Source: Heterodontus francisci
Lineage: Eukaryota
Reading direction: 5' to 3'
DNA length: 64,000 nt
Assembly (NCBI RefSeq): GCF_036365525.1
Contig: NC_090419.1
Coordinates: 13,144,001-13,208,000 of the forward strand
Shown: one piece after another, positions 3,801 through 59,527 of the stretch
How the letters are laid out: each line of letters opens with the position of its first letter
Numbering within the stretch: the first letter of the stretch is position 1
Made by a program: the position numbers and the translations under genes
The notes under the pieces: model-generated
Told to the model about the DNA's origin: nothing
The model's database searches: none
What the model saw: the letters and a program-made list of their open reading frames with translations, nothing else

Positions 3801-6800
3801 CCCGCCACCTTCAAAGATCAATTCACATGCACCCCCAGGTCCCTCTGTTCCTGCACACTCTTTAGAACTGTGCCATTAACTCTATACTGCCTCATCCTAT
3901 CCCTTCTGCCAAAATGCATCACCTCACGCTTCCCTGTGTTAAATTTCACCTGCACTGTTTGCCACTCCTCCATGTTTGGTATCATCACCAAATTTGGAGA
4001 CTCTACTCTGTATTCCAAGATCCAAATCATGTGTATATCAAGAAAAGCATTGGTTCCAGCACTGACCCTTGGGGAACACCACCGTCGACCATCCTCCAGT
4101 CTGAAAAATATCCATTTACCACAACTCGCTGTTTTTTGTTCTTAAGCCAATTTTTTTTTTAACCCAGTTGGACACAATTCCATGAGCCTCAATTTTGTTA
4201 ACCAGCCTTGTATGTGGTACCTTATCAAATGCGTTCTTAAAATCCATATAAACAACATCCACTACATTCCCTTCATCAATCTTCCCTGTTACGTCATCAA
4301 AATATTCGGTTAGATTTGTCAACGTGATCTGCCTTTTACAAATCCACGCTGGCTATCCTTAATTAACTCGAAGCTCTCCAAGTGCCCCATTATTGTTTCT
4401 GAATCCTTACCCACCACTGAGCTTAGACCAACTGGCCTGTAGTTGCTGGGGCTGTCCTTACAACTTCTCTGGAATAAGGGTGTCGCATTTTTCTGCACCT
4501 CCCCCATGTCTAGGGAAGACTGGAAGATTGTGGCAAGCCCTTCCGCTATCTCCACCCCCACTTCCTTTAGCAACCTGGGATGCAAGCCATCGGGACCAGG
4601 TGACTTATCTACCCTAAGCATAGCCAGCCCTTCCAGTACCTCCTCTCGCTATTTTTACCCTATCCTTTGCCTATACTCTCTCCAATTCCACTGATATTTT
4701 GTCAGATTCCTCTTCCTGAGTAATCACCGATACAAAGCACTTATTAAGCATTCAAACCTTGCTCTGTGCCTTTAAGCATATATTACCCTCTTTGCTCCTA
4801 ATGTCCTCTATAAATAAGAACATAGGAGATGGTGGCATAGTGGTAATGTCACTGAATTAGTAATCCAGAGGTTCAGGCTAAGGTCCCGGGGACACCGCAG
4901 CTGGTAGAATTTAACTTCAATAAATTAATAAAAATCTGGAATTGAAAGCTGGCCTCATTGATCTTCATGAAAACCTCATCTGGCTCACTCATTTTCTTCA
5001 GGGAAGGAAATCTGCCGTCCTTACCAGGTGACTCCAGACCCACATTAATATGGCTGACTCTTAACTGCCCTCAGTTGTCAAAGGGCAATTCGGAATGGGC
5101 GACAAGTGCGGACTGAAACGGTGGTTAATTAAAAACAGAAAATGCTGGGAATGCTCAGCAGGTCTGGCAGCATCTGTGGAGAGAGAAGCAGAGTTAACGT
5201 TTCAGGTCTGTGACCCTGCACCAGAATTGGCAAAAGGCATTTCTAACCCATTTTCCAGCAGTTTCTGATTTTATTTCCCATTTCCAGCATCTGCAGTATT
5301 TTGCTTGTACTGAAACAGGGGTTGCTGGGTGAAGAGGTGCATGTTTGTGATGTGTATCTCAGTAAAGGATAGGCTCCTGTATATCCTTCGCCACCAGGCT
5401 TTCAGGAATAGAACCTGCCGACCGGTTTCCACTGCACAAGGCATCTCCCTGAAAGAAATGAACAACACTCATGTCTCTCTCGGCCTCAGTTGGTAGCAAA
5501 CCTACTGTGCAGGTTACACGCCACCGTGCTGCCGCGATCTGCCGTGTGGCGGACTCCGTGGCAGGCCGCTGCCCGCACAATCTTCTGGTACCCCCTTCCA
5601 CCAAGGATCCTGGCGTCAGGACCGCAAGAAAATCCAGGCCTGTGCGTGCATGGAACGGTGATCCTGTCTGCATTACTTGGTATAACGCTCCTGTTGTATC
5701 ATCTGACTTACTATCAGCAATGAATGGCACAGGAGGTCCATGCCACTGGTTGGAAAAAGTGCTCAGATCAGGTCCTGGTACACGGCTTGGCTGGAAGACT
5801 GCCCTTTCGTGCATCCGTCATTCCCGCGACCTTCTGTTGTGTTTCTCTTTCAGATCTTCACCTGTTTCATGTGCAGTGCGAATGCATCTATCGTGACAAT
5901 AAACTGGCCGATTTATCTTGGCAAGATGCTTACGATGGCACTACCGTCATGTACTACGACACTGCTGGCAAGACATTCGTCGCAGTACAGCCTATTGCGC
6001 GAGCTGAGGTGGACAGGCGGAACTCGAACACAGATTACACTGAATCTGTTCCACGCCTTATCGAGGGTCTCTGTGACAAGATTAAACAAACAGCTGGAAC
6101 AAGCAACTTCACCCTGGAAAAAATGGGTAGGTTATAAAGACAGCAATTTACACTTAAATAAAAATGTCCTAAAGTACTTTGCCCAGAGAGAGGGTGGGGG
6201 GGAGGGTGCGGAATTGAGAGAGAATAAGCATACAGTGGGAAAGAGATAACTGTTTGCATTAATGTTTGGCAAAGGTAATTCTCAAAGTATTCAGCAATGA
6301 ACCTTACTGCTATTCTGACACCGCAGATTTACAGAGCGAGATCTCATCAAAAAAAGGTGTGGGATTGAAATTTAGTCTCTGCAATGGTGCCACGACAATA
6401 TCATCGATTGTCACCAACAAAAAAAAACAACATCTGGTTCACCAATGTCCTTAAGGGAAGGAAATCTGCTGTCCTTACCTGGTCTGGCCTACATATGACT
6501 CCATGTCCACAACTATGTGGTTGACTCTTAACTGAATTTTGAAATGGCCTAGCCAGCCACTCAATTATCAAGGGCAATTAAGGATGGGGAACAAATGCTG
6601 GCCTTGCCAGTGACGCCCACATCCCATGAAAAAAACAATCTGCCATATGATCACATCTCCGACAATGTGTTGTAATGAAACCGTTGCATTGGTGGTGCTA
6701 CCGTATGGAAAAGATATTAAACTGCTACCCTATCTGCCTGTTCTAGTGAACAATGTGAATACGAAATCTCTCTATCTCAAAAAGCTCCGCTTAGACAGCC

Positions 6801-9407
6801 CCCATCAAACACTCCCAGGACAGGTACAGCACGGGGGTTAGATACAGAGTAAAGCTCCCTCTACACTGTCCCCCATCAAACACTCCCAGGACAGGTACAG
6901 TATGGGGGTTAGATACAGAGTAAAGCTCCCTAAAGAAAAAAAAATGGGGTTAGATACAGAGTAAAGCTCCCTCTACACTGTCCCCCATCAAACACTCCCA
7001 GGACAGGTACAGCACGGGGGTTAGATACAGAGTAAAGCTCCCTCTACACTGTCCCCCATCAAACACTCCCAGGACAGGGACAGCAAGGGGGTTAGATACA
7101 GAGTAAAGCTCCCTCTACACTGTCCCCCATCAAACACTCCCAGGACAGGGACAGCAAGGGGGTTAGATACAGAGTAAAGCTCCCTCTACACTGTCCCCCA
7201 TCAAACACTCCCAGGACAGGGACAGCAAGGGGGTTAGATACAGAGTAAAGCTCCCTCTACACTGTCCCCCATCAAACACTCCCAGGACAGGGACAGCAAG
7301 GGGGTTAGATACAGAGTAAAGCTCCCTCTACACTGTCCCCCATTAAACACTCCCAGGACAGGTACAGTATGGGGGTTAGATACAGAGTAAAGCTCCCTAA
7401 AGAAAAAAAAATGGGGTTAGATACAGAGTAAAGCTCCCTCTATATTGTCCCCATCAAACACTCCCAGGACAGGTACAGCACGGGGGTTAGCTGCTGCCTG
7501 ATTGAGGACTGCTCAGTGGTTAACGAGGTTCAGCTGCAAGAGGAAGACTGAGACTTTAAGGAGGGTTTTTCCATCTAGCCCTGTCTCCAAAAGAGGAAAG
7601 CAGGAGGCCAGAAGAACTGACAGCTCTTATGGGTTTGGCTTTTTGAAGCCCTTTCATTGATTGTTGTGGGGAGGGGGAAAGAAGAGACCTGAAGATCTTG
7701 GGTGGGGCTGTTTTGTTTGAACAGGGGGATCCCGTGTTTTAACAGCATCGAATAGGAACTCCCTCCCCACCCCAATGACCTAGCCTGGGATAGCTGGAGC
7801 TGCCCAGATGAAGAGACTTTCTCCTTTCCCTTTTCTGTTTTCCCTCAATGCTGGAAGCAACGTGTGCTTGGGCAACTTACAGCTGTCCCAGGTGAAGATA
7901 TCGCAACCCCCCCCCCCCTCCTCCCCCAACTGGAAGACCAGCGAGAGGACTGACTTGATGCAACATCTGAAAAGAGACTGATTCCTCCTGACCTTCCTCT
8001 CCTTCAGCCTCTCTCCCTTGCCATAACCTCCAGCAGAGTATTTGTGGGACAATTTGTTATTATTATTTTTTGTTCTCCTTTCTCTCAAACCTTATTTTAT
8101 TTCAACGGTGGGTGTGACTGTTCCACCCCATGGCTTCACAGTCCTCTCCGGTGGTGGGGCCTTCCTATGCTGCAGCAGCCACTCCTGTATCCCCATCACC
8201 ATTTAAAATCTTGACATCAAGGCATGGGGTGAAGTGTTACACCCACCCGACCACGAATACTGAGGCATGTGTTAAGGCAATGGTCGAGGTAGTCAACCCC
8301 TCGGCCATTGTTGCAGCCTCAAAGATGTACGGGAAGGCAGTGTCTTTCCTGAAGACTGAGCAGGCGGGGAGGCCCTGGCCCCAAGCGGGGGCTCTACCGT
8401 GGGCTGGACCTTCCTGCCAGCGAACCCTCTGGAGGAGAGCGCCTCGGCTGTCCGGGCAGCCGACTCCGGGGATGGACCGGTGTGCGGAGGAGCAGCTGAA
8501 GCCCCTCACTGCGGGTGACGAGGGGGCTCGGGAGTGTGGAGCGCTCCCGGCCGAGTTGACCCCCTGCTCAGCCAGAACTGCTCATTGGACCCAGGCCCCG
8601 AAATCCTCCTCGGGAGCTGCCTCTCGGAAATGCCCTCCGTGCCATTCTAATCGGCGCGGAGGGGTTTCCTGTACGGGCTGCTCCTGCACACTCTCCACTT
8701 CCTCACCCTCGTCAGCTGGCCAGACACACCCTGGTGGTCCGCGTTGCCATCTGGCGGCGAGGGGAAACCCCGATGGAGGTCTCTGTACGTGGGAGTCCTC
8801 CCCCTTTACATCAGGGACCTGGGGTGGAGGATGTTGCACAGGGCAGTCCTGTGCAATAGACTTTTAAGTAGGTTCACGGACTCCCAGGCCGCCTGTACTT
8901 TCTGCGGCCTGGACGAGTCCGTATTCCACGAATATATGGAGTGTGCGAGGTTGCAGCCCCTCTTTGAGTATTTGAAGGGGCTGCTCCTCAAATTCTGGCT
9001 GCACTTCAGTCCCATGCTCCTGATCTTTGGTCACCCGGTGCGGAAGGGCGTGGACCGGGAGGAGGATCTCCTCGTCGGTCTGCTCCTGGGCCTGGCCAAG
9101 GTGGCAATTCACAGATCCACACTGTGGGCTGTCAGGGGTGCGGGGGAGGGTGGGTGGGGGGTCCGTCCTCCCTGATTGCCTGCCCCTCTTCCGCGGTTAT
9201 GTTCGTGCCCGGGCATCCCTGGAGGAGGAGCATGCGGTGTCCGCCGGTACGCTTGAGGCCTTCCGCGACCGGTGGGCACCGCAGGGACTGGAGTGCATCG
9301 TCGACGCCGAGAATGGCATTTTAATTTGAGTTTTTGTTTTATTTATCTGTTTTTAATAAAGTTATTTATTTAAAATGTATATAAAGGAGGCCTGGGGAAT
9401 AAAGGTC

Positions 9408-9445
<38 letters not shown>

Positions 9446-11651
9446 CAGGTTTGATACAAAGTAAAGCTCCAAAAAATAAATGGGTTAGATATCGAGTAAA
9501 GCTCACTCTACACTGTCCACATCAGAAAAGGTCTCCACCCAAGGTGGAGCTGCCATTCTTGTGGTTTCTCTGTGTTCACTTATTCATGAGTATCATATTG
9601 AAGAAAACCTTCGAGCTGCAGTGAGATTGTCCCAAATTCAGTTTACACCCGAGTAAACTGTTCCAGCCAACACGGGGGAGAGTTTTATTCCATTATTCTG
9701 GAGCTGCACTCAGACCCAGGGTGACAGGATGGCACTTGAACCATTTCACCATCATTTCATGAAGAACCAGGTTCTGGGAGATTCTAGACGATGCTGATTA
9801 TAACCTGCAATCCATTCCTGTCTGGTTTTTTTTTCACAGCTCCCACATTTACCAGAACCTTTATTGAGAAGAAAGCCGGTCGGAGTAATTTGGTGTGTTT
9901 GGTGAAGGGCTTTTCCCCCAGTGACATTAAAGTGAGCTGGGCGAGAAACGGAGTCACTGTCAACGGATCAGAGATAACAAACATCCTACCTCAAAGGGAT
10001 GGGACCTTTCAGGCGAGAAGTATCCTCACATTGAGTGGAGATGTTGATGCTTCATATTCCTGTCAAGTGGAACATGAGACCATCACTGGCAAACTCATAG
10101 TACTGCTCGGTAAGGAAATAAAAAACAGCAGTCTTTCACTAAGATTGTGGTGGTCTTCTACCATAACTTCACCTTACTGCACTGTCTACATATCTCTAAT
10201 TCCCTTCGTACTCAAAAATCTATCCACCTCTGTCTTGAATATACTCAACCACTGATCGTCCACAGATCTCTGGGGTTGAGAATTCCAAAGATTCGCAACC
10301 CTCTGAGTGAAGAAATTTCTCCTCTTCTCAGTTGTGGCCTCTCCCCCAGTCAGTAATGGGAAGTGACCATGTATCTGCTTCCTTCCCTGTCTCTCACAAC
10401 CTTCTACCACCTCCTGCAACTCACTGTCACACCATTGCCATGGGCCATTTACTGGTGGGTAATGTTCAGGGAGCTTTAACACCTACGGAACCGGATGAGT
10501 GTGAAGTGTGTGTGTGGGGAACGTCCTGGTGTCAAACACAAAGTAAACTATCTCCCCCCCTCCCCCTCCCCCTCCCAACGGTCCTTTCCTCAGAACGCAA
10601 CAGGATCGCAGAAAATGAAGCTTTGATCATCGTTGGAGCCGTGCTGGGAATACTGGGAATAAGTGCGGCTGTGGTGACTGGAATTCTCTACTGCTGCATC
10701 TTAAATCGTAAGTTACTACACTAGATATAAACTCTCGTTAATGTTACAGATTAAATTGGGTTGATGTTGAATTGTTAACCTTCCTGTTTCTCATGCAGGT
10801 GGCAACCAGTTCAGTGTTCACCCAACAGGTAAGAGAAACTGTCCTTTACTCTGAATAATTGTGGCCGGGTAAGAATATTTTAGGTTTGGAGATATGTTTA
10901 ACACGGCCGGACAATTTGGTGTTTTACTGTTTGCAGCGAAGTTCACAAACCGGGCAGGACCGTGTGGAGTGAATCCATGCAACGCCAGTGTGCGGTCCAA
11001 CACCTCAAACTCCTCCAACTCCAGCAGCACATCAGGTAACGGGGGTTTTGTAACCTCGTGAACTCAAAAACAGATCCACACCAACCATCCATCTCAACAA
11101 TGTGATCTTACCCAGGAATAACGTAACTGGATCCCCCCTCCCCGCAGACCAGGAAGCTCCCACGCTTGGCCCCTGGGTTGATGCTAAGATCCTTCATCAC
11201 AGCTGGTGCAGGACAGGAGTGGAACGGTTGGTCTCAGTGCCCCTGGGCTGGGCGGGGTTGGGGAACATTCATAACCATCCCTGCTCCTGGCCACGATCCG
11301 GTGATTCCTGCGGGAAAGAGCGCAGGAGTGGACATTAGGATCAGGATCCGCGATGCCTATCCCACCAACTGTTGACCCTCACAGTTAGGAGACACACCTG
11401 GTCAATGACTGCTAACATGGGCTACCCAGTAGGTGCCATGTGTGTGGGACTGTGCTCAAACAGGGGGGCATCATCCAGAGGGGAAGGGGAGAGGCTGGTG
11501 AGAGAATAACAATATTCTTTATATCTGTGAACCGGTTTTCAGCAACGGTTTCCTGGTTTGCAACCCAGGACTGACAAAAGCTTTGAACGAATTAACACGA
11601 CACCTTGTTCTCTTCTTTACAGCTGATGGTTTGACTAAATCCCATGCATAA
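803..11651 (+). CDS. WB: MHC W-category beta chain gene (WB-a), 7 exons, 293 aa
   Basis: Exons 803-869 (leader MSVFYRWVFVAVSVLAVVDSSS), 5854-6126 (beta1), 9840-10109 (beta2 IgC1), 10594-10707 (TM, IIVGAVLGILGISAAVVTGILY), 10799-10828, 10937-11035, 11623-11651 (TAA). All introns are GT-AG phase 1; total 882 nt, open frame. AATAAA at 11783 and 11815. Class II beta-type exon layout, but beta2 has class I alpha3-like ILPQRDGTFQ. Confidence 0.88.
1490..3330 (+). mobile_element. CR1 LINE, degenerate ORF2 (RT) and 3' end
   Basis: [40 protein letters not shown] and RRNFFTQRVVNL, broken by stops and frameshifts. Confidence 0.9.
3335..4790 (-). mobile_element. CR1 LINE fragment
   Basis: KSPGPDGLHPRLLKE, YMDFKNAFDKVPH and VQRRFTGMVPG on the minus strand. 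Confidence 0.88.
4826..5110 (+). mobile_element. tRNA-derived SINE with LINE-derived tail (related copies ~6390-6630, 13100-13270, 14440-14584, 25600-25860)
   Basis: GGTGGCATAGTGG A-box-like head and a shared body GGGAAGGAAATCTGCCGTCCTTACC...CTCTTAACTGCCCTC. Confidence 0.6.
5854..6126 (+). CDS. WB: WB-a beta1 (membrane-distal) exon
   Basis: cag|ATC...ATGG|gtagg. DLHLFHVQCECIYRD...DAYDGTTVMYYD...LIEGLCDKIK...NFTLEKM, with the class I alpha2/class II beta1-type Cys pair and AYDG motif. Confidence 0.88.
6797..7490 (+). repeat. ~72-bp minisatellite in the WB-a beta1-beta2 intron
   Basis: Unit GGGGTTAGATACAGAGTAAAGCTCCCTCTACACTGTCCCCCATCAAACACTCCCAGGACAGGTACAGCAC; a remnant resumes at ~9448-9525. 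Confidence 0.95.
7491..9445 (+). mobile_element. Tx1-clade (L1-Tx1) LINE, internally deleted
   Basis: ORF1-like GVKCY...EACVKAM...AIVAASKMYGKAV; ORF2 C-terminal zinc knuckle DLGWRMLH...CTFCGLDESVFH...C; AATAAA followed by a (TA)n tail. Confidence 0.75.
9840..10109 (+). CDS. WB: WB-a beta2 IgSF C1 exon
   Basis: LVCLVKGFSPSDIKVSW...LPQRDGTFQ...YSCQVEH: C1-set motifs plus the class I alpha3-like P..DGTFQ. Confidence 0.92.
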
Positions 11652-11939
11652 GGTGAAAGGTCTGTCGAATGTATTCACTGTTACTGCAGAAACTGGGGCC
11701 TGTGTCTCTGTGCTGTGAGGGATTCATCTGTCACCTCAACAGATAGGACGCAGATCGTCCGTGGGCAAATAAGCATTCATTAAATAAAACCTCAATGAGA
11801 ACCTTCCTGTATACAATAAAGACTGTCACTGTATTGATTCAATAATTCAGTGTCAAATTATTTGTCTTGGATTTTCTGAAGGAACTGTGCTGTCAGTGCA
11901 GACACAAATGGTAACAATTACACATCCACTTTAGAAAGC

Positions 11940-12200
11940 ACATGAACGAGGCTGATGCTAAAGTGCAGTATCGAGGGAGTGCTGCATTGTCACTGGCACT
12001 GTCTTTTGCATGAGATATTGACGGAGCCCCGTCTGTCTGTTCAGTTCAATGTTAAAGATCCCACGCCATTGTTTAAAGGAACAAAGAGTTCTTCTTGTGC
12101 TGAAGACACTCTCTCTTATCAAAAACAGATTAACCAGTCACGCACCTAATTCATCACTGTGAGATTTTGTTGAATACTAAATGGCTGCAATTTGCTTACA
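11940..12200 (+). mobile_element. Deu-domain SINE (other copies ~18350-18480, 45190-45445, 55340-55610, 62690-62880)
   Basis: GAGGGAGTGCTGCATTGTC...CCCCGTCTG...GTTAAAGATCCCAC resembles the AmnSINE1/SacSINE1 Deu domain. Confidence 0.65.
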
Positions 12201-13276
12201 CAGGTCATGTCAAACTAATTCATTATCGAGTGTTTTGGACTGTTTGAGAAACATGATCACAGTGTTAGACAAACACCAGTATCTCCTCTTTCATCTCATT
12301 CCCTTTTCCTTCCTGGAATGCAAAGTCAGAGATGAAGCATCCCGGCAAAGTTTGAAGAGTTTTATTGTCAGGTTTCTGTTTGTATTTGCTGTATTTTTTT
12401 AGGATCAAAGATTGTGCTGTCATTGACACTCAGTTTCTCAGTGTCTTTGTTTGCTTGTGTTTTCACTGGGATTTGGGATCAATCACACACACTGTTCTGA
12501 GTCGATTTATCGTTGACGGTCATCATTTCCCCCAGAACATGATCAGTAAACGATGGGGTGCGTTGATTCAACCCATTAAAATAAATATGAGTGAATATCT
12601 CCTCTTACACAGTTCCCAACAATGCAAACTGGTTAAAACTAAAGCGTGCAACCTAAAATTCAGAATCCCAGGCATTTGGCAAAAATACACAGGTGTAGAA
12701 ATTGGAATGCTCCTGAATCGGGGTGAGATCCGGGTGCAAGGTGCTGTGCACAGAGTTAAAGAGAGACCATGGGAAACTGTTCCACCAGCCTCATTACTAT
12801 CGGACTCTCGAGCTGTGGGCACAGTCGCAGCCCCTGAGGCAGCTCACTGCCCATCTTAGAAGCAGCGGGCATTACTGCACTTGCAGCAAAACCCTACACA
12901 GTCTCATGAGCCAACCCTGCACCATACTGTATGCCCCTCAATCCCTCACCCTCTGGTGCCTTCGCCACCAACACCCACCAGACCCTGTCTGATGCATGCC
13001 CGAGAATGAAAAGACTGTAAAATGTTTTCTTAAAAATACATATGTCCTTTAAAAAGCTGCATGGTTTTGCTGTTATATTTATCTTCCAGCCTGCGGGATT
13101 TTTTTTCAAATTTTTTCATGGGATGTGGGCGTCACTGGCAAGGCCAGCATTTGTTGCCCATCCCTAATTGGCTTTGACAACTGAGTGGCTTGCTACGCCA
13201 TTTCAGAGGGCAGTAAAGAGTCAACCATACTGCTTTGGGTCTGGAGTCACATATAGGCCAGACCAGGTAAGGTGAG

Positions 13277-14445: not shown

Positions 14446-14584
14446 TGGCAGACTTCCTTCCCTAAAGGACATTAGTGAACCAGATGGGCTTTTATGACAA
14501 TAGCAGTTTCATTGCACCACTATTAATTAATTGAATTTAAATTCAACCAGCTGTCATGATCGGATTGGAATCCGTGTCCCCAGG

Positions 14585-48400: not shown

Positions 48401-51400
48401 GCTCCCTCAGTACTGACATTCTCACAGTGCGGCGCTCCCTCAGTACTGACCCTCCGACAGTGCGGCGCTCCCTCAGTACTGACATTCTCACAGTGCGGCG
48501 CTCCCTCAGTACTGACCCTCCGACAGTGCGGTGCTCCCTCAGTACTGACCCTCCGACAGTGCGGCGCTCCCTCAGTACTGACCCTCTGACAGTGCAGCGC
48601 TCCCTCAGTACTGACCCTCCGTCAGTGTGGCGCTCCCTCAGTACTGACCCTGCGACAGTGCGGCGCTCCCTCAGTACTGACCCTCCGACAGTGCGGCGCT
48701 CCCTCAGTACTGACCCTCCGACAGTGCGGCGCTCCCTCAGTACTGACATTCTCACAGTGCGGCGCTCCCTCAGTACTGACCCTCCGACAGTGCGGCGCTC
48801 CCTCAGTACTGACATTCTCACAGTGCGGCGCTCCCTCAGTACTGACCCTCCGACAGTGCGGTGCTCCCTCAGTACTGACCCTCCGACAGTGCGGCGCTCC
48901 CTCAGTACTGACATTCTCACAGTGCGGCGCTCCCTCAGTACTGACCCTCCGACAGTGCGGCGCTCCCTCAGTACTGACATTCTCACAGTGCGGCGCTCCC
49001 TCAGTACTGACCCTCCGACAGTGCGGCGCTCCCTCAGTACTGACATTCTCACAGTGCGGCGCTCCCTCAGTACTGACCCTCCGTCAGTGCGGCGTTCCCT
49101 CAGTACTGACCCTCCGTCAGTGTGGCGCTCCCTCAGTACTGACCCTCCGACAGTGCGGCGCTCCCTCAGTACTGACCCTCCGACAGTGCGGCGCTCCCTC
49201 AGTACTGACCCTCCGACAGTGCGGCGCTCCCTCAGTACTGACATTCTCACAGTGCGGCGCTCCCTCAGTACTGACCCTCCGACAGTGCGGTGCTCCCTCA
49301 GTACTGACCCTCCGACAGTGCGGCGCTCCCTCAGTACTGACATTCTCACAGTGCGGCGCTCCCTCAGTACTGACCCTCCGACAGTGCGGCGCTCCCTCAG
49401 TACTGACATTCTCACAGTGCGGCGCTCCCTCAGTACTGACCCTCCGACAGTGCAGCGCTCCCTCAGTACTGACATTCTCACAGTGCGGCGCTCCCTCAGT
49501 ACTGACCCTCCGACAGTGCGGCGCTCCCTCAGTACTGACATTCTCACAGTGCGGCGCTCCCTCAGTACTGACCCTCCGACAGTGCAGCGCTCCCTCAGTA
49601 CTGACATTCTCACAGTGCGGCGCTCCCTCAGTACTGACCCTCCGACAGTGCGGTGCTCCCTCAGTACTGACCCTCCGACAGTGCGGCGCTCCCTCAGTAC
49701 TGACATTCTCACAGTGCGGCGCTCCCTCAGTACTGACCCTCCGACAGTGCGGCGCTCCCTCAGTACTGACATTCTCACAGTGCGGCGCTCCCTCAGTACT
49801 GACCCTCCGACAGTGCGGTGCTCCCTCAGTACTGACCCTCCGACAGTGCGGCGCTCCCTCAGTACTGACATTCTCACAGTGCGGCGCTCCCTCAGTACTG
49901 ACCCTCCGACAGTGTGGCGCTCCCTCAGTACTGACATTCTCACAGTGCGGCGCTCCCTCAGTACTGACCCTCCGACAGTGCAGCGCTCCCTCAGTACTGA
50001 CATTCTCACAGTGCGGCGCTCCCTCAGTACTGACCCTCCGACAGTGCGGCGCTCCCTCAGTACTGACATTCTCACAGTGCGGCGCTCCCTCAGTACTGAC
50101 CCTCCGACAGTGCGGTGCTCCCTCAGTACTGACCCTCCGACAGTGCGGCGCTCCCTCAGTACTGACCCTCTGACAGTGCAGCGCTCCCTCAGTACTGACC
50201 CTCCGTCAGTGTGGCGCTCCCTCAGTACTGACCCTGCGACAGTGCGGCGCTCCCTCAGTACTGACCCTCCGACAGTGCGGCGCTCCCTCAGTACTGACCC
50301 TCCGACAGTGCGGCGCTCCCTCAGTACTGACATTCTCACAGTGCGGCGCTCCCTCAGTACTGACCCTCCGACAGTGCGGCGCTCCCTCAGTACTGACATT
50401 CTCACAGTGCGGCGCTCCCTCAGTACTGACCCTCCGACAGTGCGGTGCTCCCTCAGTACTGACCCTCCGACAGTGCGGCGCTCCCTCAGTACTGACATTC
50501 TCACAGTGCGGCGCTCCCTCAGTACTGACCCTCCGACAGTGCGGCGCTCCCTCAGTACTGACCCTCCGACAGTGCGGCGCTCCCTCAGTACTGACCCTCC
50601 GACAGTGCGGCGCTCCCTCAGTACTGACCCTCCGACAGTGCGGCGCTCCCTCAGTACTGACATTCTCACAGTGCGGCGCTCCCTCAGTACTGACCCTCCG
50701 ACAGTGCGGTGCTCCCTCAGTACTGACCCTCCGACAGTGCGGTGCTCCCTCAGTACTGACCCTCCGACAGTGCGGCGCTCCCTCAGTACTGACCCTCTGA
50801 CAGTGCAGCGCTCCCTCAGTACTGACCCTCCGTCAGTGTGGCGCTCCCTCAGTACTGACCCTGCGACAGTGCGGCGCTCCCTCAGTACTGACCCTCCGAC
50901 AGTGCGGCGCTCCCTCAGTACTGACCCTCCGACAGTGCGGCGCTCCCTCAGTACTGACATTCTCACAGTGCGGCGCTCCCTCAGTACTGACCCTCCGACA
51001 GTGCGGCGCTCCCTCAGTACTGACATTCTCACAGTGCGGCGCTCCCTCAGTACTGACCCTCCGACAGTGCGGTGCTCCCTCAGTACTGACCCTCCGACAG
51101 TGCGGCGCTCCCTCAGTACTGACATTCTCACAGTGCGGCGCTCCCTCAGTACTGACCCTCCGACAGTGCGGCGCTCCCTCAGTACTGACCCTCCGACAGT
51201 GCGGCGCTCCCTCAGTACTGACCCTCCGACAGTGCGGCGCTCCCTCAGTACTGACATTCTCACAGTGCGGCGCTCCCTCAGTACTGACCCTCCGACAGTG
51301 CGGTGCTCCCTCAGTACTGACCCTCCGACAGTGCGGCGCTCCCTCAGTACTGACATTCTCACAGTGCGGCGCTCCCTCAGTACTGACCCTCCGACAGTGC

Positions 51401-54400
51401 GGCGCTCCCTCAGTACTGACATTCTCACAGTGCGGCGCTCCCTCAGTACTGACCCTCCGACAGTGCAGCGCTCCCTCAGTACTGACATTCTCACAGTGCG
51501 GCGCTCCCTCAGTACTGACCCTCCGACAGTGCGGCGCTCCCTCAGTAGTGACATTCTCACAGTGCGGCGCTCCCTCAGTACTGACCCTCCGACAGTGCGG
51601 TGCTCCCTCAGTACTGACCCTCCGACAGTGCGGCGCTCCCTCAGTACTGACCCTCTGACAGTGCAGCGCTCCCTCAGTACTGACCCTCCGTCAGTGTGGC
51701 GCTCCCTCAGTACTGACCCTGCGACAGTGCGGCGCTCCCTCAGTACTGACCCTCCGACAGTGCGGCGCTCCCTCAGTACTGACCCTCCGACAGTGCGGCG
51801 CTCCCTCAGTACTGACATTCTCACAGTGCGGCGCTCCCTCAGTACTGACCCTCCGACAGTGCGGCGCTCCCTCAGTACTGACATTCTCACAGTGCGGCGC
51901 TCCCTCAGTACTGACCCTCCGACAGTGCGGTGCTCCCTCAGTACTGACCCTCCGACAGTGCGGCGCTCCCTCAGTACTGACATTCTCACAGTGCGGCGCT
52001 CCCTCAGTACTGACCCTCCGACAGTGCGGCGCTCCCTCAGTACTGACATTCTCACAGTGCGGCGCTCCCTCAGTACTGACCCTCCGTCAGTGCGGCGTTC
52101 CCTCAGTACTGACCCTCCGTCAGTGTGGCGCTCCCTCAGTACTGACCCTCCGACAGTGCGGCGCTCCCTCAGTACTGACCCTCCGACAGTGCGGCGCTCC
52201 CTCAGTACTGACCCTCCGACAGTGCGGCGCTCCCTCAGTACTGACATTCTCACAGTGCGGCGCTCCCTCAGTACTGACCCTCCGACAGTGCGGTGCTCCC
52301 TCAGTACTGACCCTCCGACAGTGCGGCGCTCCCTCAGTACTGACATTCTCACAGTGCGGCGCTCCCTCAGTACTGACCCTCCGACAGTGCGGCGCTCCCT
52401 CAGTACTGACATTCTCACAGTGCGGCGCTCCCTCAGTACTGACCCTCCGACAGTGCAGCGCTCCCTCAGTACTGACATTCTCACAGTGCGGCGCTCCCTC
52501 AGTACTGACCCTCCGACAGTGCGGCGCTCCCTCAGTACTGACATTCTCACAGTGCGGCGCTCCCTCAGTACTGACCCTCCGACAGTGCGGTGCTCCCTCA
52601 GTACTGACCCTCCGACAGTGCGGCGCTCCCTCAGTACTGACCCTCTGACAGTGCAGCGCTCCCTCAGTACTGACCCTCCGTCAGTGTGGCGCTCCCTCAG
52701 TACTGACCCTGCGACAGTGCGACGCTCCCTCAGTACTGACCCTCCGACAGTGCGGCGCTCCCTCAGTACTGACCCTCCGACAGTGCGGCGCTCCCTCAGT
52801 ACTGACATTCTCACAGTGCGGCGCTCCCTCAGTACTGACCCTCCGACAGTGCGGTGCTCCCTCAGTACTGACCCTCCGACAGTGCGGCGCTCCCTCAGTA
52901 CTGAAATTCTCACAGTGCGGCGCTCCCTCAGTACTGACATTCTCACAGTGCGGCGCTCCCTCAGTACTGACCCTCCGACAGTGCGGCGCTCCCTCAGTAC
53001 TGACATTCTCACAGTGCGGCGCTCCCTCAGTACTGACCCTCCGACAGTGCGGCGCTCCCTCAGTACTGACATTCTCACAGTGCGGCGCTCCCTCAGTACT
53101 GACCCTCCGACAGTGCGGCGCTCCCTCAGTACTGACATTCTCACAGTGCGGCGCTCCCTCAGTACTGACCCTCCGACAGTGCAGCGCTCCCTCAGTACTG
53201 ACATTCTCACAGTGCGGCGCTCCCTCAGTACTGACCCTCCGACAGTGCGGCGCTCCCTCAGTACTGACATTCTCACAGTGCGGCGCTCCCTCAGTACTGA
53301 CCCTCCGACAGTGCGGTGCTCCCTCAGTACTGACCCTCCGACAGTGCGGCGCTCCCTCAGTACTGAAATTCTCACAGTGCGGCGCTCCCTCAGTACTGAC
53401 ATTCTCACAGTGCGGCGCTCCCTCAGTACTGACCCTCCGACAGTGCGGCGCTCCCTCAGTACTGACATTCTCACAGTGCGGCGCTCCCTCAGTACTGACC
53501 CTCCGACAGTGCGGCGCTCCCTCAGTACTGACATTCTCACAGTGCGGCGCTCCCTCAGTACTGACCCTCCGACAGTGCGGCGCTCCCTCAGTACTGACAT
53601 TCTCACAGTGCGGCGCTCCCTCAGTACTGACCCTCCGACAGTGCAGCGCTCCCTCAGTACTGACATTCTCACAGTGCGGCGCTCCCTCAGTACTGACCCT
53701 CCGACAGTGCGGCGCTCCCTCAGTACTGACATTCTCACAGTGCGGCGCTCCCTCAGTACTGACCCTCCGACAGTGCGGTGCTCCCTCAGTACTGACCCTC
53801 CGACAGTGCGGCGCTCCCTCAGTACTGACCCTCTGACAGTGCAGCGCTCCCTCAGTACTGACCCTCCGACAGTGCGGCGCTCCCTCAGTACTGACATTCT
53901 CACAGTGCGGCGCTCCCTCAGTACTGACCCTCCGACAGTGCGGCGCTCCCTCAGTACTGACATTCTCACAGTGTGGCGCTCCCTCAGTACTGACCCTCCG
54001 ACAGTGCGGCGCTCCCTCAGTACTGACCCTCTGACAGTGCGGCGCTCCCTCAGTACTGACCCTCCGACAGTGCGGCGCTCCCTCAGTACTGACCCTCCGA
54101 CAGTGCGGCGCTCCCTCAGTACTGACCCTCCGACAATGCGGCACTCCCTCAGTACTGACCCTCCGACAGTGCGGCGCTCCCTCAGTACTGACCCTCCGAC
54201 AGTGCAGCACTCCCTCAGTACTGACCCTCTGACAGTGCGGCGCTCCCTCAGTACTGACCCTCCGACAGTGCGGCGCTCCCTCAGTACTGACCCTCCGACA
54301 GTGCGGCGCTCCCTCAGTACTGACCCTCCGACAGTGCGGCGCTCCCTCAGTACTGACATTCTCACAGTGCGGCGCTCCCTCAGTACTGACCCTCCGACAG

Positions 54401-54582
54401 TGAGGCGCTCCCTCAGTACTGACCCTCCGACAGTGCGGCGCTCCCTCAGTACTGACATTCTCACAGTGCGGCGCTCCCTCAGTACTGACTCTCCGACAGT
54501 GCGGCACTCCCTCAGTACTGACCCTCCGACAGTGCGGCACTCCCTCAGTACTGACTCTCCGACAGTGCGGCGCTCCCTCAGT
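45412..54582 (+). repeat. 33-bp satellite array, ~9.2 kb (~278 units), with higher-order structure
   Basis: Same unit as 21002-23645 plus a frequent GACATTCTCACAG variant; no frame-breaking indel across the array. Confidence 0.98.
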
Positions 54583-54663
54583 CCCTGATTGTGGAGCCGG
54601 GAGGAGTGTGACACTGCGGGGCACTTCCAGTTACTACTCTGCTCACACTCCACTCCCCGTAAC

Positions 54664-57600
54664 CAGTGAGCTGCCTCAGGGGCTGCGACTGTGCCCACAG
54701 CTCGAGAGTCCGATAGTAATGAGGCTGGTGGAACAGTTTCCCATGGTCCTGGCACCGGTCTCTCTTTAATTCTGTGCACAGCACCTTGCACCCGGATCTC
54801 ACCCCGATTCAGGAACATTCCAATTTCTACACCTGTGTATTTTTGCCAAATGCCTGGGATTCTGAATTTTAGGTTGCACGCTTTAGTCTTAACCAGTTTA
54901 AGAACCAGTTTCGTAGTTTGCATTGTTGGGAACTGTGTAAGAGGAGATATTCACTCATATTTATTTTAATGGGTTGAATCAACGCACCCCATCGTTTACT
55001 GATCATGTTCTGGGGGAAATGATGACCGTCAACGATAAATCGACTCAGAACAGTGTGTGTGATTGATCCCAAATCCCAGTGAAAACACAAGCAAACAAAG
55101 ACACTGAGAAACTGAGTGTCAATGACAGCACAATCTTTGATCCTAAAAAAATACAGCAAATACAAACGGAAACCTGACAATAAAACTCTTCAAACTTTGC
55201 CGGGATGCTTCATCTCATTCCCTTTTCCTTGCTGGAATGCAAAGTCAGAGATGAAAGAGGGGATACTGGTGTTTGTCTAACACTGTGATCATGTTTCTCA
55301 AACAGTCCAAAACACTCGATAATGAATTAGTTTGACATGACCTGTGTAAGCAAATTGCAGCCATTTAGTATTCAACAAAATCTCACAGTGATGAATTAGG
55401 TGCGTGACTGGTTAATCTGTTTTTGATAAGAGAGAGTGTCTTCAGCACAAGAAGAACTCTTTGTTCCTTTAAACAATGGCGTGGGATCTTTAACATTGAA
55501 CTGAACAGACAGACGGGGCTCCGTCAATATCTCATGCAAAAGACAGTGCCAGTGACAATGCAGCACTCCCTCGATACTGCACTTAAGCATCAGCCTAGTT
55601 CATGTGCTTTCTAAAGTGGATGTGTAATTGTTACCAGTTGTGTCTGCACTGACAGCACAGTTCCTTCAGAAAATCCAAGACAAATAATTTGACACTGAAT
55701 TATTGAATCAATACAGTGACAGTCTTTATTGTATACAGGAAGGTTCTCATTGAGGTTTTATTTAATGAATGCTTATTTGCCCACGGACGATCTGCGTCCT
55801 ATCTGTTGAGGTGACAGATGAATCCCTCACAGCACAGAGACACAGGCCCCAGTTTCTGCAGTAACAGTGAATACATTCGACAGACCTTTCACCTTATGCA
55901 TGGGATTTAGTCAAACCATCAGCTGTAAAGAAGAGAACAAGGTGTCGTGTTAATTCGTTCAAAGCTTTGGTCAGTCCTGGGTTGCAAACCAGGAAACCGT
56001 TGCTGAAAACCGGCTCACAGATATAAAGAATATTGTGATTCTCTCACCAGCCTCTCCCCTTCCCCTCTGGATGATGCCCCCCTGTTTGAGCACAGTCCCA
56101 CACACATGGCACCTACTGGGTAGCCCATGTTAGCAGTCATTGACCAGGTGTGTCTCCTGACTGTGAGGGTCAACAGTTGGTGGGATAGGCATCGCGGATC
56201 CTGATCCCAATGTTCACTCCTGCGCTCTTTCCCGCAGGAATCACCGGATCGTGGCCAGGAGCAGGGATGGTTATGAATGTTCCCCAACCCCGCCCAGCCC
56301 AGGGGCACTGAGACCAACCGTTCCACTCCTGTCCTGCACCAGCTGTGATGAAGGATCTTAGCATCAACCCAGGGGCCAAGCGTGGGAGCTTCCTGGTCTG
56401 CGGGGAGGAGGGATCCAGTTACATTATTCCTGGGTAAGATCACATTGTTGAGATGGATGGTTGGTGTGGATCTGTTTTTGAGTTCACGAGGTTACAAAAC
56501 CCCCGTTACCTGATGTGCTGCTGGAGTTGGAGGAGTTTGAGGTGTTGGACCGCACGCTGGCGTTGCATGGATTCACTCCACACGGTCCTGCCCGGTTTGT
56601 GAACTTCGCTGCAAACAGTAAAACACCAAATTGTCCGGCCGTGTTAAACATATCTCCAAACCTAAAATATTCTTACCCGGCCACAATTATTCAGAGTAAA
56701 GGACAGTTTCTCTTACCTGTTGGGTGAACACTGAACTGGTTGCCACCTGCATGAGAAACAGGAAGGTTAACAATTCAACATCAACCCAATTTAATCTGTA
56801 ACATTAACGAGAGTTTATATCTAGTGTAGTAACTTACGATTTAAGATGCAGCAGTAGAGAATTCCAGTCACCACAGCCGCACTTATTCCCAGTATTCCCA
56901 GCACGGCTCCAACGATGATCAAAGCTTCATTTTCTGCGATCCTGTTGCGTTCTGAGGAAAGGACCGTTGGGAGGGGAAGGGGGAGGGGGGAGATAGTTTA
57001 CTTTGTGTTTGACACCAGGACGTTCCCCACACACACACTTCACACTCATCCGGTTCCGTAGGTGTTAAAGCTCCCTGAACATTACCCACCAGTAAATGGC
57101 CCATGGCAATGGTGTGACAGTGAGTTGCAGGAGGTGGTAGAAGGTTGTGAGAGACAGGGAAGGAAGCAGATACATGGTCACTTCCCATTACTGACTGGGG
57201 GAGAGGCCACAACTGAGAAGAGGAGAAATTTCTTCACTCAGAGGGTTGTGAATCTTTGGAATTCTCAACCCCAGAGATCTGTGGACGATCAGTGGTTGAG
57301 TATATTCAAGACAGAGGTGGATAGATTTTTGAGTACGAAGGGAATTAGAGATATGTAGACAGTGCAGTAAGGTGAAGTTATGGTAGAAGACCACCACAAT
57401 CTTAGTGAAAGACTGCTGTTTTTTATTTCCTTACCGAGCAGTACTATGAGTTTGCCAGTGATGGTCTCATGTTCCACTTGACAGGAATATGAAGCATCAA
57501 CATCTCCACTCAATGTGAGGATACTTCTCGCCTGAAAGGTCCCATCCCTTTGAGGTAGGATGTTTGTTATCTCTGATCCGTTGACAGTGACTCCGTTTCT

Positions 57601-57880
57601 CGCCCAGCTCACTTTAATGTCACTGGGGAAAAAGCTCTTCACCAAACACACCAAATTACTCCGGCCGGCTTTCTTCTCAATAAAGGTTCTGGTAAATGTG
57701 GGAGCTGTAAAAAAAAAACCAGACAGGAATGGATTGCAGGTTATAATCAGCATCATCTAGAATCTCCCAGAACCTGGTTCTTCATGAAATGATGGTGAAA
57801 TGGTTCAAGTGCCATCCTGTCACCCTGGGTCTGAGTGCAGCTCCAGAATAATGGAATAAAACTCTCCCCCGTGTTGGCTG
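54664..57880 (-). repeat. Right arm of the ~3.2-kb inverted repeat
   Basis: Same match as the left arm; differs by scattered SNPs, a few small indels and one micro-inversion. Confidence 0.95.
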
Positions 57881-59527
57881 TAGTGGTACAATGTAAAGTG
57901 AGTTTGGGAAAATCTCACTGCAACAGATCCACAGCATAAAACTCCTCTTTAGTCGGATATACTGATCGACAAGCGAACACAGAGAAAGCATGAAGCTGGC
58001 TGCTCTGAGATACAGGACCATTCACTGCTGCAGTAAGGAGACATTTCTGATGGGGACAGTGCAGAGGGAGCTTTACTCTGTATCTAACCCCTGTGCTGTA
58101 CCTATCCTGGGGCGTGTTTGATGGCGGACAGTGCAGAGGGAGCTTTACTCTGTATCTAACCCCTGTGCTGTACCTATCCTGGGGCGTGTTTGATGGCGGA
58201 CAGTGCAGAGGGAGCTTTACTCTGTATCTAACCCCTGTGCTGTACCTATCCTGGGGAGTGTTTGATGGGGGACAGTGTAGAGGGAGCTTTACTCTGTATC
58301 TAACCCCTGTGCTGTACCTATCCTGGGGCGTGTTTGATGGGGGACAGTGTAGAGGGAGATTTACTCTGTATCTAACCCCTGTGCTGTACCTATCCTGGGG
58401 CGTGTTTGATGGCGGACAGTGCAGAGGGAGCTTTACTCTGTATCTAACCCCTGTGCTGTACCTATCCTGGGGAGTGTTTGATGGGGACAGTGTAGAGGGA
58501 GCTTTACTCTGCATCTAACCCCTGTGCTGTACCTATCCTGGGGAGTGTTTGATGGGGACAGTGTAGAGGGAGCTTTACTCTGTATCTAACCCCGTGCTGT
58601 ACCTGTCCTGGGGAGTGTTTGATGGGATGGAGGGTATTAGTAAGGCCATTCATCACTGGAACAGACAGACGGGGAAATGGTTTTCTAACGTGTTCATCGG
58701 ACAGCATCTCTGTCCTCTGTACTACATTCTTCTTCTTTCTTTCTTTTGGGCCTCCTTATCTCGAGAGACAATGGATACGCGCATTATTGGTCGTGTTATC
58801 ATGTCAGAATTAAGCTCCCTCTGAAAAGCAGTAATTTTCAATACTGAAAACTTTGAGTATCACATTTGCTCAATTACAATGGCAACAGTAATTGAGCAGT
58901 TTATTAATTTCGAGCTCCGAACACACAACCCAAACGAGTCTTTCCAAGATCATGCTTTCTATCTCATTAACTTCCTCCAGCTGCTCGTCCCTGCTGGCAA
59001 CTCGGAGCCTCAACCATTGTGAGTCCTCGATTCCATCTGTTCCATCCTATGTGGAATACCTTCCACCATCATATCACTAAATTTCCGGAATTCATTTCCC
59101 AAACCCTCTGCCTTGCTATCAAAACCGCCATCTACAACCAGATATTCACCCCACTCCCTGCTCACGGTCTCAATTTCCCTTCTCTCCCTCTGGGCAAAGT
59201 GCGATGGGGCATTTTGATGTTTGCATCAGTTGTTGTTTATGTAAACTATCTCACCTATTTTTTCCAGGGTGGTGTTGCTTGCTACAGCTGCTTGCTTGGT
59301 CTTCTCACATAAGTTCTCAATGAAGAATGGAACAGACTCAATGTAATTTGGATCCGAGTTCCGCCTGTTCACTTCAGCTTGTACGATTGGCTGAGCTGAA
59401 ACCAGTTGTTTCTTTTCTGCATCATAGTAGAAAATAGTGGTTCCATCGAAAGCATCTTCCCAAAAGACATTGAGAAACTTCTGGTCACGATAGACACAAC
59501 CACATCGTGTCTGATACAGGCGCAGTT
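55894..59527 (-). CDS. WB: MHC W-category beta chain gene (WB-a', inverted paralog of WB-a); leader exon not found in window
   Basis: Exons 59527-59255 (beta1), 57704-57435 (beta2), 56951-56838 (TM), 56746-56717, 56608-56510, 55922-55894 (TAA). Exon sizes are identical to WB-a, splice sites intact, frame open. Confidence 0.87.
57435..57704 (-). CDS. WB: WB-a' beta2 IgSF C1 exon
   Basis: Identical to WB-a beta2 except KSFFP versus KGFSP. Confidence 0.92.
58047..58625 (-). repeat. ~72-bp minisatellite in the WB-a' beta1-beta2 intron
   Basis: Reverse complement of the 6797-7490 unit; 24-aa periodic ORF. Confidence 0.95.
59255..59527 (-). CDS. WB: WB-a' beta1 exon (not in the ORF track)
   Basis: Hand translation: ELRLYQTRCGCVYRDQKFLNVFWEDAFDGTTIFYYDAEKKQLVSAQPIVQAEVNRRNSDPNYIESVPFFIENLCEKTKQAAVASNTTLEKI, flanked by cag| and |gtgaga. 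Confidence 0.88.

Follow-up and report, generated by a model that had tools for sequence, protein, structure and literature searches.

WB-a and WB-a', two beta-chain genes within the 64,000-nucleotide stretch of Heterodontus francisci DNA that we analysed (the window), carry diverged membrane-distal beta1 domains on an Ig, transmembrane (TM) and cytoplasmic module that is nearly identical between them. This mosaic is best explained by recurrent, 3'-restricted interlocus gene conversion between old WB paralogs, a reading to which we attach a probability of about 85%. WB-a (forward strand) corresponds to XP_067880438.1 and WB-a' (reverse strand) to XP_067880252.1; the genes are inverted relative to one another and lie tail to tail, with ~42 kb between them. 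Full-length comparisons use the RefSeq proteins, each exon of which was checked against the window. The features of the two arms are as follows (CP, connecting peptide).

803-869 (+): WB-a leader exon (MSVFYRWVFVAVSVLAVVDSSS); XP_067880438.1 residues 1-22 match 803-868 at 100%, and the end at 869 is placed by phase
5854-6126 (+): WB-a beta1, the membrane-distal domain, 273 nt, phase 1; AG/GT splice sites and RefSeq protein match
6781-7490 (no strand): 71-bp minisatellite in intron 2 of WB-a, with a remnant unit at 9448-9524
7494-9447 (+): 5'-truncated non-LTR retrotransposon fragment of ~2 kb inside the minisatellite, in arm a only and with no counterpart in a'; its zf-RVT match is weak (E 7.6e-4) and falls short of the Pfam cutoff
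9525-9663 (+): diverged homologous intron stretch directly 5' of the converted tract; global alignment to 58047-57881
9664-12849 (+): converted tract, arm a; 99.2% identical to 57880-54664
9840-10109 (+): WB-a beta2, Ig C1-set (Pfam C1-set E 7.5e-18); RefSeq protein 100%, splice positions taken from the a' joints
10594-10709 (+): WB-a CP and TM exon; RefSeq protein match and equivalent a' RNA joints
10801-10828 (+): WB-a tail exon 1, 28 nt; transferred from a' joints 56744/56717 through the tract alignment
10937-11035 (+): WB-a tail exon 2, 99 nt (AKFTNRAGPCGVNPCNASVR...); a' RNA joints
11623-11651 (+): WB-a last exon, coding part (...ADGLTKSHA, stop), followed by 3' UTR; RefSeq protein and RNA joints
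12298-12328 (no strand): 31-bp micro-inversion between the arms, flanked by an 8-nt inverted repeat (TTCATCTC/GAGATGAA); tract alignment
54664-57880 (-): converted tract, arm a'; alignment, with DNA contigs branching at 57880 and 54664
55894-55922 (-): WB-a' last exon, coding part; RNA joint 55922 to 56510 and RefSeq protein
56510-56608 (-): WB-a' tail exon 2; joints in two RNA runs
56717-56744 (-): WB-a' tail exon 1; joints in two RNA runs
56836-56951 (-): WB-a' CP and TM exon; RNA joints and RefSeq protein
57435-57704 (-): WB-a' beta2; RNA joints and RefSeq protein
57881-58047 (-): diverged homologous intron stretch 5' of the tract, arm a'; global alignment to arm a
58048-58626 (no strand): 72-bp minisatellite in intron 2 of WB-a'; very high k-mer depth, hence a dispersed repeat
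59255-59527 (-): WB-a' beta1, 273 nt, phase 1, AG/GT sites; RefSeq protein, and RNA joint 59255 to 57704 in two species

Both belong to the WB_Nds5L subgroup of W-category MHC beta chains (Okamura et al, 2021), so that the earlier note had named them rightly as W-category WB genes. The order of exons and domains is of class II beta type (leader, beta1, Ig C1 beta2, CP/TM, cytoplasmic exons), as RefSeq protein matches and RNA joints attest, and an AF2 model predicts four strands and a kinked helix for beta1, an Ig domain and a TM helix, with the beta chains of HLA-DR, DP and DO as its closest structural matches (E ~1e-13). The beta2 of both arms reads ILPQRDGTFQ, giving Pro57 and Gly61 and no Trp61; Pro57, with Gly61 (Gly as in class I alpha3) in place of Trp61, is a mark of W-category beta chains (Okamura et al, 2021, PNAS, PMC8713811, Fig 4 legend). 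Seen against classical class II beta chains, Gly61 thus stands where Trp61 is expected, and neither beta1 yields a match to MHC_II_beta (PF00969) at E values up to 1. The closest sequence matches of beta1 are class I-type alpha2 domains, but these are weak (Pfam MHC_I E 0.05; PDB E 0.001-0.05). Of the class I alpha2-like residues A32/G35/D37, the motifs AYDGTT (a) and AFDGTT (a') retain A32 and G35, position 37 being Thr; D37 is likewise absent from other WB_Nds5L rows of the published dataset (PMC8713811). That work lists the WB_Nds5L genes and their pairing with WA_DS5-like genes (Okamura et al, 2021), and its WB_Nds5L genes display the same class II beta-type architecture with beta2 Pro57 and Gly61. 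Individual rows correspond closely: the row "cloudy catshark WB Nds5L 159K" (PMC8713811) has the sequence of S. torazame protein P0004 (159-kb contig), and the beta2 and TM rows of zebra bullhead shark (H. zebra) "WB Nds5L 1" match those of a' almost letter for letter. The RefSeq names "DQ beta-like" and "zinc-alpha-2-glycoprotein-like" are misleading for these genes. A word-indexed protein search with the beta2 ORF (9791-10252, region 17-107) returned nothing; an exhaustive beta1 search and a profile search recovered the family.

The tract (9664-12849 against 57880-54664) holds 24 substitutions over ~3.19 kb (0.75%), indels of 1, 12 and 20 bp and the single 31-bp micro-inversion. It takes in beta2, TM, the three tail exons (on which the RNA splice joints agree with the earlier note), their introns and the 3' flank, ending ~1.2 kb downstream of the stop codon. 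Of 542 coding nucleotides 4 are changed, close to the rate of the tract as a whole; at the protein level only two beta2 residues change (G to S and S to F), with TM and tail residues identical, so that alignment bears out the near-identity previously described for exons, introns and flank alike. Because introns and 3' flank are as alike as the exons, selection at the protein level cannot explain the identity. The substitutions are spaced as for one event, with no patchiness as judged by eye.

The 5' edge of the tract is sharp and falls 176 bp before the beta2 exon start at 9840, close to the ~175 bp of the earlier estimate. Upstream of it the homology is diverged and collinear (9525-9663 against 58047-57881, z = 22 from 500 shuffles), and the diverged motif GCAGTGAGATT.TCCCAAA.TCA.TTTACA that the earlier note placed directly upstream of the tract is present within this stretch. 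Further landmarks of the same kind hold good: the intronic minisatellite is shared (71/72-bp units at 6781-7490 and 58048-58626), and CATCTGACTTAC occurs in intron 1 at 5700-5711 (+) and 59673-59684 (-), 143 and 146 bp upstream of beta1. The two arms can still be aligned over the final 400 bp of intron 1 (z = 11.6), and over its final 200 bp they are 66% identical. Beyond the 3' edge (12849/54664) no homology is left between the arms (z = -0.4). Older, diverged homology bounds the tract on its 5' side only; at the 3' edge the tract may simply end with the old duplicated unit, and replacement by duplication there is indistinguishable from conversion.

Of the 90 in-frame residues of beta1, a and a' share 49; the split first codon encodes D in one gene and E in the other, and nucleotide identity is 68.5%. 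The earlier count of 49 of 91 is thereby reproduced. Synonymous divergence is high (dS ~0.6-0.9), with a pairwise dN/dS of 0.33-0.67, and the adjoining introns are similarly diverged. The hint in the earlier note that the groove domain is under diversifying pressure finds no support in these dN/dS values or in the conservation of beta1 lineages across orders, two of them common to sharks and rays; moreover, a' beta1 differs from that of a close relative at 2 of 274 nt against ~3-4% in introns. Differences between the two beta1 domains fall at 19 of 33 strand and 14 of 36 helix positions, with no clear concentration on ligand-facing positions. These comparisons point to long-term preservation of distinct beta1 types in preference to diversification.

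Exon-wise protein trees across 13 elasmobranch species, in which the patterns outside Heterodontus rest on RefSeq protein models, give conflicting histories for the two extracellular domains. The beta1 tree groups by paralog lineage: a' joins two Scyliorhinus genes (98/97), and an "RLRY" lineage (100/99) and a fourth lineage (100/100) each contain both sharks and rays. The beta2 tree groups by taxon, recovering the Heterodontus pair (100/98), batoids (96/97), orectolobiforms (100/99) and Scyliorhinus (96/96), which is the outcome that had been predicted for concerted evolution. In AU tests, for which the groups were named after the tree was viewed, beta2 data reject the beta1-lineage grouping (p = 3e-62 and 4e-5) and beta1 data reject a grouping by species in both Heptranchias (2e-4) and Scyliorhinus (1e-5); a beta1 clade of Heterodontus a and a' is not rejected (p = 0.09, on 91 columns only). 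Paralogs within a species, in six genera, share 38-66% of beta1, 75-98% of beta2 and 79-100% of TM and tail residues (the 79%, from Chiloscyllium, probably arises artefactually from a gene model whose C-terminus is divergent, and beta1 of the Mustelus pair is not comparable). Between species, the TM, tail and Ig parts are only 50-78% identical. The protein trees indicate that repeated homogenisation is the usual mode in sharks and rays and not a one-off.

That both genes exist and are transcribed is borne out by the reads. In DNA contigs from the sequenced animal the path splits precisely at 57880 and at 54664, continuing into an a-type and an a'-type flank (this read evidence consists of Logan contigs, which merge the arms into mosaic consensus pieces). 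RNA contigs contain the a'-specific beta1-to-beta2 joint, and in a spliced RNA contig that runs from beta2 into the tail, the letters at 57629 and 57636 are of a type. Compared with this genome, a close relative shows ~2% divergence in tract exons (contig depth 184-192) and ~3-4% in introns (one intron contig, of depth 18, at ~3.6%); since the 0.75% between a and a' is less than this divergence, the homogenisation is younger than the species split. The tract-to-unique ratio of contig depth (1.56 and 1.26 in two runs) was set aside, as contig depth is not copy number.

The earlier proposal of old paralogs with a recently converted membrane-proximal and tail module and a spared beta1 thus stands, on tract introns that match as exons do, on diverged upstream homology and on conflicting trees. 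An old duplication would have produced WB-a and WB-a', with beta1 exons belonging to different long-lived lineages. Recent non-reciprocal exchange between the inverted copies, probably break repair templated by the other copy, would then have overwritten at least 3.19 kb, beginning 176 bp ahead of the beta2 exon and reaching ~1.2 kb beyond the stop, to leave different membrane-distal domains on nearly identical Ig, TM and cytoplasmic modules. Family-wide, the 3' module would have been homogenised repeatedly within each lineage, with the beta1 types held apart. The tract, its edges, expression and the beta1/beta2 tree conflict are direct observations; from these we infer the molecular route of conversion, its direction, and the protection of beta1 by selection as opposed to a mere recombination barrier. 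A length of 3.2 kb is long for a single classical meiotic conversion tract. In large inverted repeats such as sex-chromosome palindromes, the arms on one chromosome are kept ~99% or more identical by non-reciprocal exchange; in the WB pair, by contrast, the unit is homogenised only partly, the spacer is 42 kb and the remainder is ~67% identical.

Among the alternatives, a recent partial duplication or exon shuffling, in which a 3.2-kb copy of one gene's 3' module came to lie, inverted, next to a beta1 exon that was unrelated or older, with no homology-driven conversion, would account for the abrupt loss of homology at 12849/54664 and for the transposon and satellite DNA that adjoins both 3' ends. 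We nevertheless hold it unlikely: 5' of the tract, collinear homology at an old level of divergence is retained at the end of intron 1, in beta1, in the minisatellite and in the 139/167-bp stretch, which means that a whole old gene was already in place, and the same mosaic recurs in several species. Still less probable is an assembly artefact in which the assembler entered a single 3' module, or the two alleles of it, at two places. Although the DNA evidence comes from one animal's contigs, which merge the arms into mosaics, the arms are told apart by 24 substitutions, three indels and the micro-inversion, contigs branch into two flanks at both edges, RNA carries both the a' junction and a-type letters, both genes have RefSeq models, and independent assemblies of other species display the same pattern.

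The remaining alternatives dispense with exchange or with an old duplication. The ligand-side domains of MHC molecules are often under positive selection, and on such general grounds one might entertain a whole-gene duplication of recent date, after which beta1 alone diverged very fast under positive selection; the dN/dS and dS values speak against it, as do flanking introns that have diverged as much as the beta1 exon, the grouping of a' beta1 with catshark genes (98/97) and its near-constancy in the sister species, and we give it very little weight. Strong purifying selection alone, with no exchange, might keep stalk, TM and tail identical, and the Ig-like, TM and tail parts are indeed conserved in the family. 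The tract introns (99%) and 3' flank, however, match as closely as the exons, and the same protein parts diverge between species to the 50-78% given above, making this the least credible of the four. Recurrent conversion of the 3' module between old paralogs is the reading that we retain.

The pattern itself is not new for the MHC, with precedents in teleost class I, bird class IIB and a cDNA-based hint for WA_DS5 in PMC8713811, whose text and supplements do not refer to gene conversion or to conflict between domains among the WB_Nds5L copies. In banded houndshark, WA_DS5 n1-n3 and n4, copies at different loci, share 47-48% of alpha1 and 95-99% of leader/alpha2/CP/TM/CY (PMC8713811, SI section 5-1). 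As in the WB pair, a variable top is combined with a constant stalk, and this in the chain that pairs with WB_Nds5L; unlike the WB pair, the case concerns an alpha chain known from cDNA only, and mechanism, tract and cross-species test are absent. Alpha1 lineages of the teleost class I U lineage are in some cases ~300 My old and shared by distant species, and have been recombined onto downstream parts whose alpha3 is homogenised species-specifically (Grimholt et al, 2015, PMC4364491). Most of these are alleles at one or a few classical loci with high polymorphism, whereas the WB genes are fixed paralogous loci of a non-classical, low-polymorphism category, with exchange between inverted genes. 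The avian class IIB duplicates DAB1 and DAB2 are >100 My old and partly homogenised by interlocus conversion (Goebel et al, 2017, PMC5470263); there too, gene parts tell different histories, but the duplication signal of birds resides in exon 3 (beta2) with short tracts, and that of the horn-shark WB pair in beta1 with a tract of >3 kb.

The W category is a recently described third kind of MHC molecule, and this locus affords a base-pair view of how the family evolves, which the trees widen to all major elasmobranch groups. That several beta1 types have been kept, two of them common to sharks and rays, and that the stalk has been reset in each lineage speaks for ligand-side functions that are distinct and conserved, and for a shared constraint acting on stalk and tail. 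For orthology within WB_Nds5L, only beta1 is usable; beta2, TM and tail are unsuitable. More tentatively, WA_DS5/WB_Nds5L pairs could behave as "groove cassettes", in which alpha1 and beta1 exons around a shared head-to-head promoter form at least four fixed types that predate the shark-ray split, and the outward stalk, TM and tail exons of both chains are homogenised per species, possibly because every pair has to suit a single species-specific partner, for example a co-receptor or a signalling adaptor for the long Ser-rich tail. If so, W molecules would be few, ancient, fixed-specificity receptors and not polymorphic presenters.

With the WB-a leader at 803-869, a WA_DS5-like head-to-head partner would lie before the window; the a' leader lies past its end. 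An element shared upstream of three genes (3330-3503, 33158-33301 and 63165-63346) was a candidate leader or promoter but resembles a dispersed repeat.

The inverted, near-identical tract that the earlier note had proposed for WB-a and WB-a' (two W-category MHC beta-chain genes, on the forward and reverse strand, respectively) is present in this window of the horn shark, Heterodontus francisci, spanning 9664-12849 in arm a and 57880-54664 in arm a'. An exhaustive protein search with the arm-a beta1 exon, together with a profile search, retrieved the corresponding RefSeq proteins: WB-a is XP_067880438.1 (referred to hereafter as P0019, named 'SLA class II ... DQ beta chain-like') and WB-a' is XP_067880252.1 (P0020, named 'zinc-alpha-2-glycoprotein-like'). 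Each exon compared matches the window at 100%, and the full-length sequences used here are these database proteins rather than models joined from window exons.

Exons of WB-a and WB-a' (beta1, membrane-distal, ligand-side domain; beta2, Ig C1 domain; CP/TM, connecting peptide/transmembrane).
803-869, +, WB-a leader
5854-6126, +, WB-a beta1
9840-10109, +, WB-a beta2
10594-10709, +, WB-a CP/TM
10801-10828 and 10937-11035, +, WB-a tail exons
from 11623, +, WB-a last exon (stop 11649-11651)
59527-59255, -, WB-a' beta1
57704-57435, -, WB-a' beta2
56951-56836, -, WB-a' TM
56744-56717 and 56608-56510, -, WB-a' tail exons
from 55922, -, WB-a' last exon (leader outside the window)

A base-by-base list of differences between the arms of the tract holds 24 substitutions (0.75%) and indels of 1, 12, and 20 bp. 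Inside this otherwise 99% identical stretch sits a 31-bp micro-inversion (12298-12328 / 55217-55247) flanked by an 8-nt inverted repeat (TTCATCTC/GAGATGAA), which looks like a hairpin-mediated flip postdating the conversion. Both tract edges are abrupt. The 5' edge (9664/57880) lies 176 bp before beta2, and beyond it a diverged 139/167 bp remain alignable (z = 22 against shuffles) and contain the motif quoted in the earlier note; next upstream comes the minisatellite, with a 71/72-bp unit, likewise located in both genes. The arm-a minisatellite (within 6781-9524) is interrupted, in this arm only, by a 2-kb fragment (7494-9447) representing the 3' end of a 5'-truncated non-LTR retrotransposon (weak zf-RVT match). 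On the 3' side of the tract, homology ends (z = -0.4). Comparison of the coding exons bears out the hand alignment reported previously, with 49/91 beta1 residues identical (68.5% nucleotide identity), two residue differences in beta2, and TM and tail the same in both arms. Homology also persists in intron 1, of which the last 200 bp are 66% identical and the last 400 bp align at z = 11.6; a 12-mer noted earlier as shared lies 143 and 146 bp upstream of the two beta1 exons.

Whether both copies are real was assessed with public sequence data for the a' arm, which comprise two DNA runs and an RNA run from the sequenced animal and an RNA run from organism B, a closely related species. All five splice joints are seen in RNA contigs of both species, including the a'-specific beta1-beta2 joint (59255 to 57704) and those of the three tail exons. 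One spliced beta2-to-tail RNA contig from the sequenced animal carries arm-a letters at 57629 and 57636, indicating that WB-a is transcribed too. DNA contigs fork or end exactly at 57880 and 54664, one running on into the arm-a flank and another crossing the a' edge. Both arms are real by this check, which is good but not final, the contigs deriving from the same animal and not from long reads. A single DNA-run contig (depth 8) has a spliced beta2-to-TM joint (56951-57435), which may stem from a processed retrocopy at another genomic site or from RNA that contaminated the DNA library. K-mer depth reaches 10^4 to 10^6 in DNA and RNA runs at intron stretches 57106-57439, 55436-55602, and 57941-58942, which are high-copy dispersed repeats, the 72-bp minisatellite among them.

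In the definition of Okamura et al. (2021, PMC8713811), W-category molecules combine class II architecture with interdomain residues of class I type. In Pfam, beta2 matches the C1-set family (E 7.5e-18); beta1 has no secure match there, and comparison with PDB sequences gives weak matches to class I-type alpha2 domains. An AlphaFold model of P0019 (19 family members as input) shows the membrane-distal fold of MHC molecules together with an Ig domain and a TM helix, its best structural matches being HLA-DR/DP/DO beta chains. The WB criterion includes the absence of Trp61 in beta2 (PMC8713811), and both arms carry ILPQRDGTFQ, that is, Pro57 and Gly61. Two dataset rows of the same paper match our sequences ('cloudy catshark WB Nds5L 159K' with protein P0004, and 'zebra bullhead shark WB Nds5L 1' with the window's beta2 and TM); these matches, with Pro57/Gly61, identify both genes as WB_Nds5L-type. 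Subgroup and genes are already published, and RefSeq carries both genes under names that are of little help. Dataset S1 also holds a third Heterodontus WB_Nds5L beta1 type ('zebra bullhead shark WB Nds5L 2', with 'FLQYAYDG', of the RLRY lineage), which is absent from the window.

WB_Nds5L-type genes pair head to head with WA_DS5-like genes (PMC8713811); the WA partners of WB-a and WB-a' would lie beyond the two ends of the window. Between the two arms lies a second head-to-head W pair (27146-28224, minus strand, and 35830-38440, plus strand). Its minus-strand member is a WA-type gene with a TM exon and a C1 exon (28224-28000) bearing the hallmark Trp61 ('DDWRFQ'); the plus-strand member (35.9-38.4 kb) is WB_DS1-like, has a beta1 without the second cysteine, and corresponds to the 'WB DS1L' rows given for H. 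zebra in Okamura's datasets.

For exon-wise trees, the earlier note had predicted that beta2 would cluster by species and beta1 by paralog. Clustering of beta2 by taxon and of beta1 by paralog lineage is the pattern obtained from an alignment of 23 WB_Nds5L-type proteins of 13 elasmobranch species (those of the other species being protein models; support values in brackets). In the beta1 tree, a' groups with genes of S. canicula and S. torazame (98/97), while Heptranchias, Chiloscyllium, Scyliorhinus, Mustelus, Pristis, and Mobula are united in an 'RLRY' lineage (100/99) and Stegostoma, Hemiscyllium, and two skates in a fourth lineage (100/100); the arm-a beta1 has its closest counterpart in the great white shark, at 73% identity. 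The beta2 tree instead tracks taxonomy, with support for the pairs of Heterodontus (100/98) and Heptranchias (88/86), for the batoids as a whole (96/97), and for orectolobiforms (100/99) and Scyliorhinus (96/96). On beta2 data, AU tests reject the beta1 groupings (p = 3e-62 and 4e-5); on beta1 data, they reject the species clades of Heptranchias (2e-4) and Scyliorhinus (1e-5) but not that of Heterodontus (p = 0.09). These p values are weakened by the groups having been named with the trees already in view. Within species, paralogs are 38-66% identical in beta1 (Mustelus pair omitted), 75-98% in beta2, and 79-100% in TM plus tail (88-100% excluding the Chiloscyllium pair, in which the divergent C-terminus of one protein model is likely an artefact). 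Homogenisation is often stronger in the more 3' parts of the gene. Sharks and rays are both represented in two of the beta1 lineages, which are therefore older than the shark-ray split, placed at about 281 My (PMC8713811 SI).

The homogenisation in H. francisci is recent. Organism B differs from H. francisci at 4/223 nt of beta2, 2/116 nt of the TM exon, and 4/99 nt of the 99-nt tail exon (all well covered), at 7/194 nt (3.6%) of an intron contig of depth 18, and at about 3-6% in thinner intron contigs (less reliable, with depth below 5). Each of these values is larger than the 0.75% separating a from a', which places the homogenisation after the split from organism B. Since PMC8713811 cites a 2018 transcriptome of H. 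zebra, organism B is probably another Heterodontus species. Its letters at diagnostic sites are a-type at 54815, 54888, and 56014 and a'-type at 57629 and 57636, a mixture that favours neither direction for the last transfer.

The suggestion that beta1 is under diversifying pressure is not supported. Pairwise dN/dS ranges from 0.33 (NG86) to 0.67 (YN00) at dS 0.6-0.9, and all beta1 lineages show conservation between orders. Between the two close species the a' beta1 is nearly unchanged (2/274 nt, one synonymous), with introns differing several-fold more. The arms a and a' differ at 19/33 positions of the sheet strands and 14/36 of the helix, if anything more often in the strands.

The simplest account of these patterns is repeated non-reciprocal exchange between paralogs, confined to the more 3' exons and introns; the latest exchange, seen almost fresh in the window, took place between inverted copies 42 kb apart. 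Beta1 has been spared in many lineages over a very long time while all downstream parts were reset, which suggests that hybrids losing a beta1 type are selected against. The diverged, repeat-filled intron 2 directly upstream of the tract edge may add a mechanical barrier.

Comparable phenomena are well known, and the present case is another instance. In teleost class I genes, alpha1 falls into ancient lineages and alpha3 is species-specific (PMC4364491), and bird class IIB genes evolve in concert (PMC5470263). In the partner chain, houndshark WA_DS5 copies at different loci are 47-48% identical in alpha1 and 95-99% in the remainder (PMC8713811 SI), the same pattern as in WB_Nds5L. PMC8713811 and its supplements make no mention of gene conversion, shuffling, or concerted evolution of these genes; the present case adds a clean tract at the level of DNA and shows the pattern across the whole family and at great evolutionary depth.

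Other repeats occur around the arms. One array (45415-54582), 9.2 kb long and made up of a GC-rich satellite with a 33-bp unit, comes to within 80 bp of the 3' tract edge in arm a', and a second, 2.6-kb array of the same unit (21004-23640) lies in the same orientation 8 kb past the arm-a edge; being direct repeats, these arrays fall outside the inverted duplication. A 170-bp element recurs upstream of three W genes (3330-3503, 33158-33301, and 63165-63346; copies 75-84% identical); we rejected it as a leader or promoter, and it looks like a dispersed repeat.
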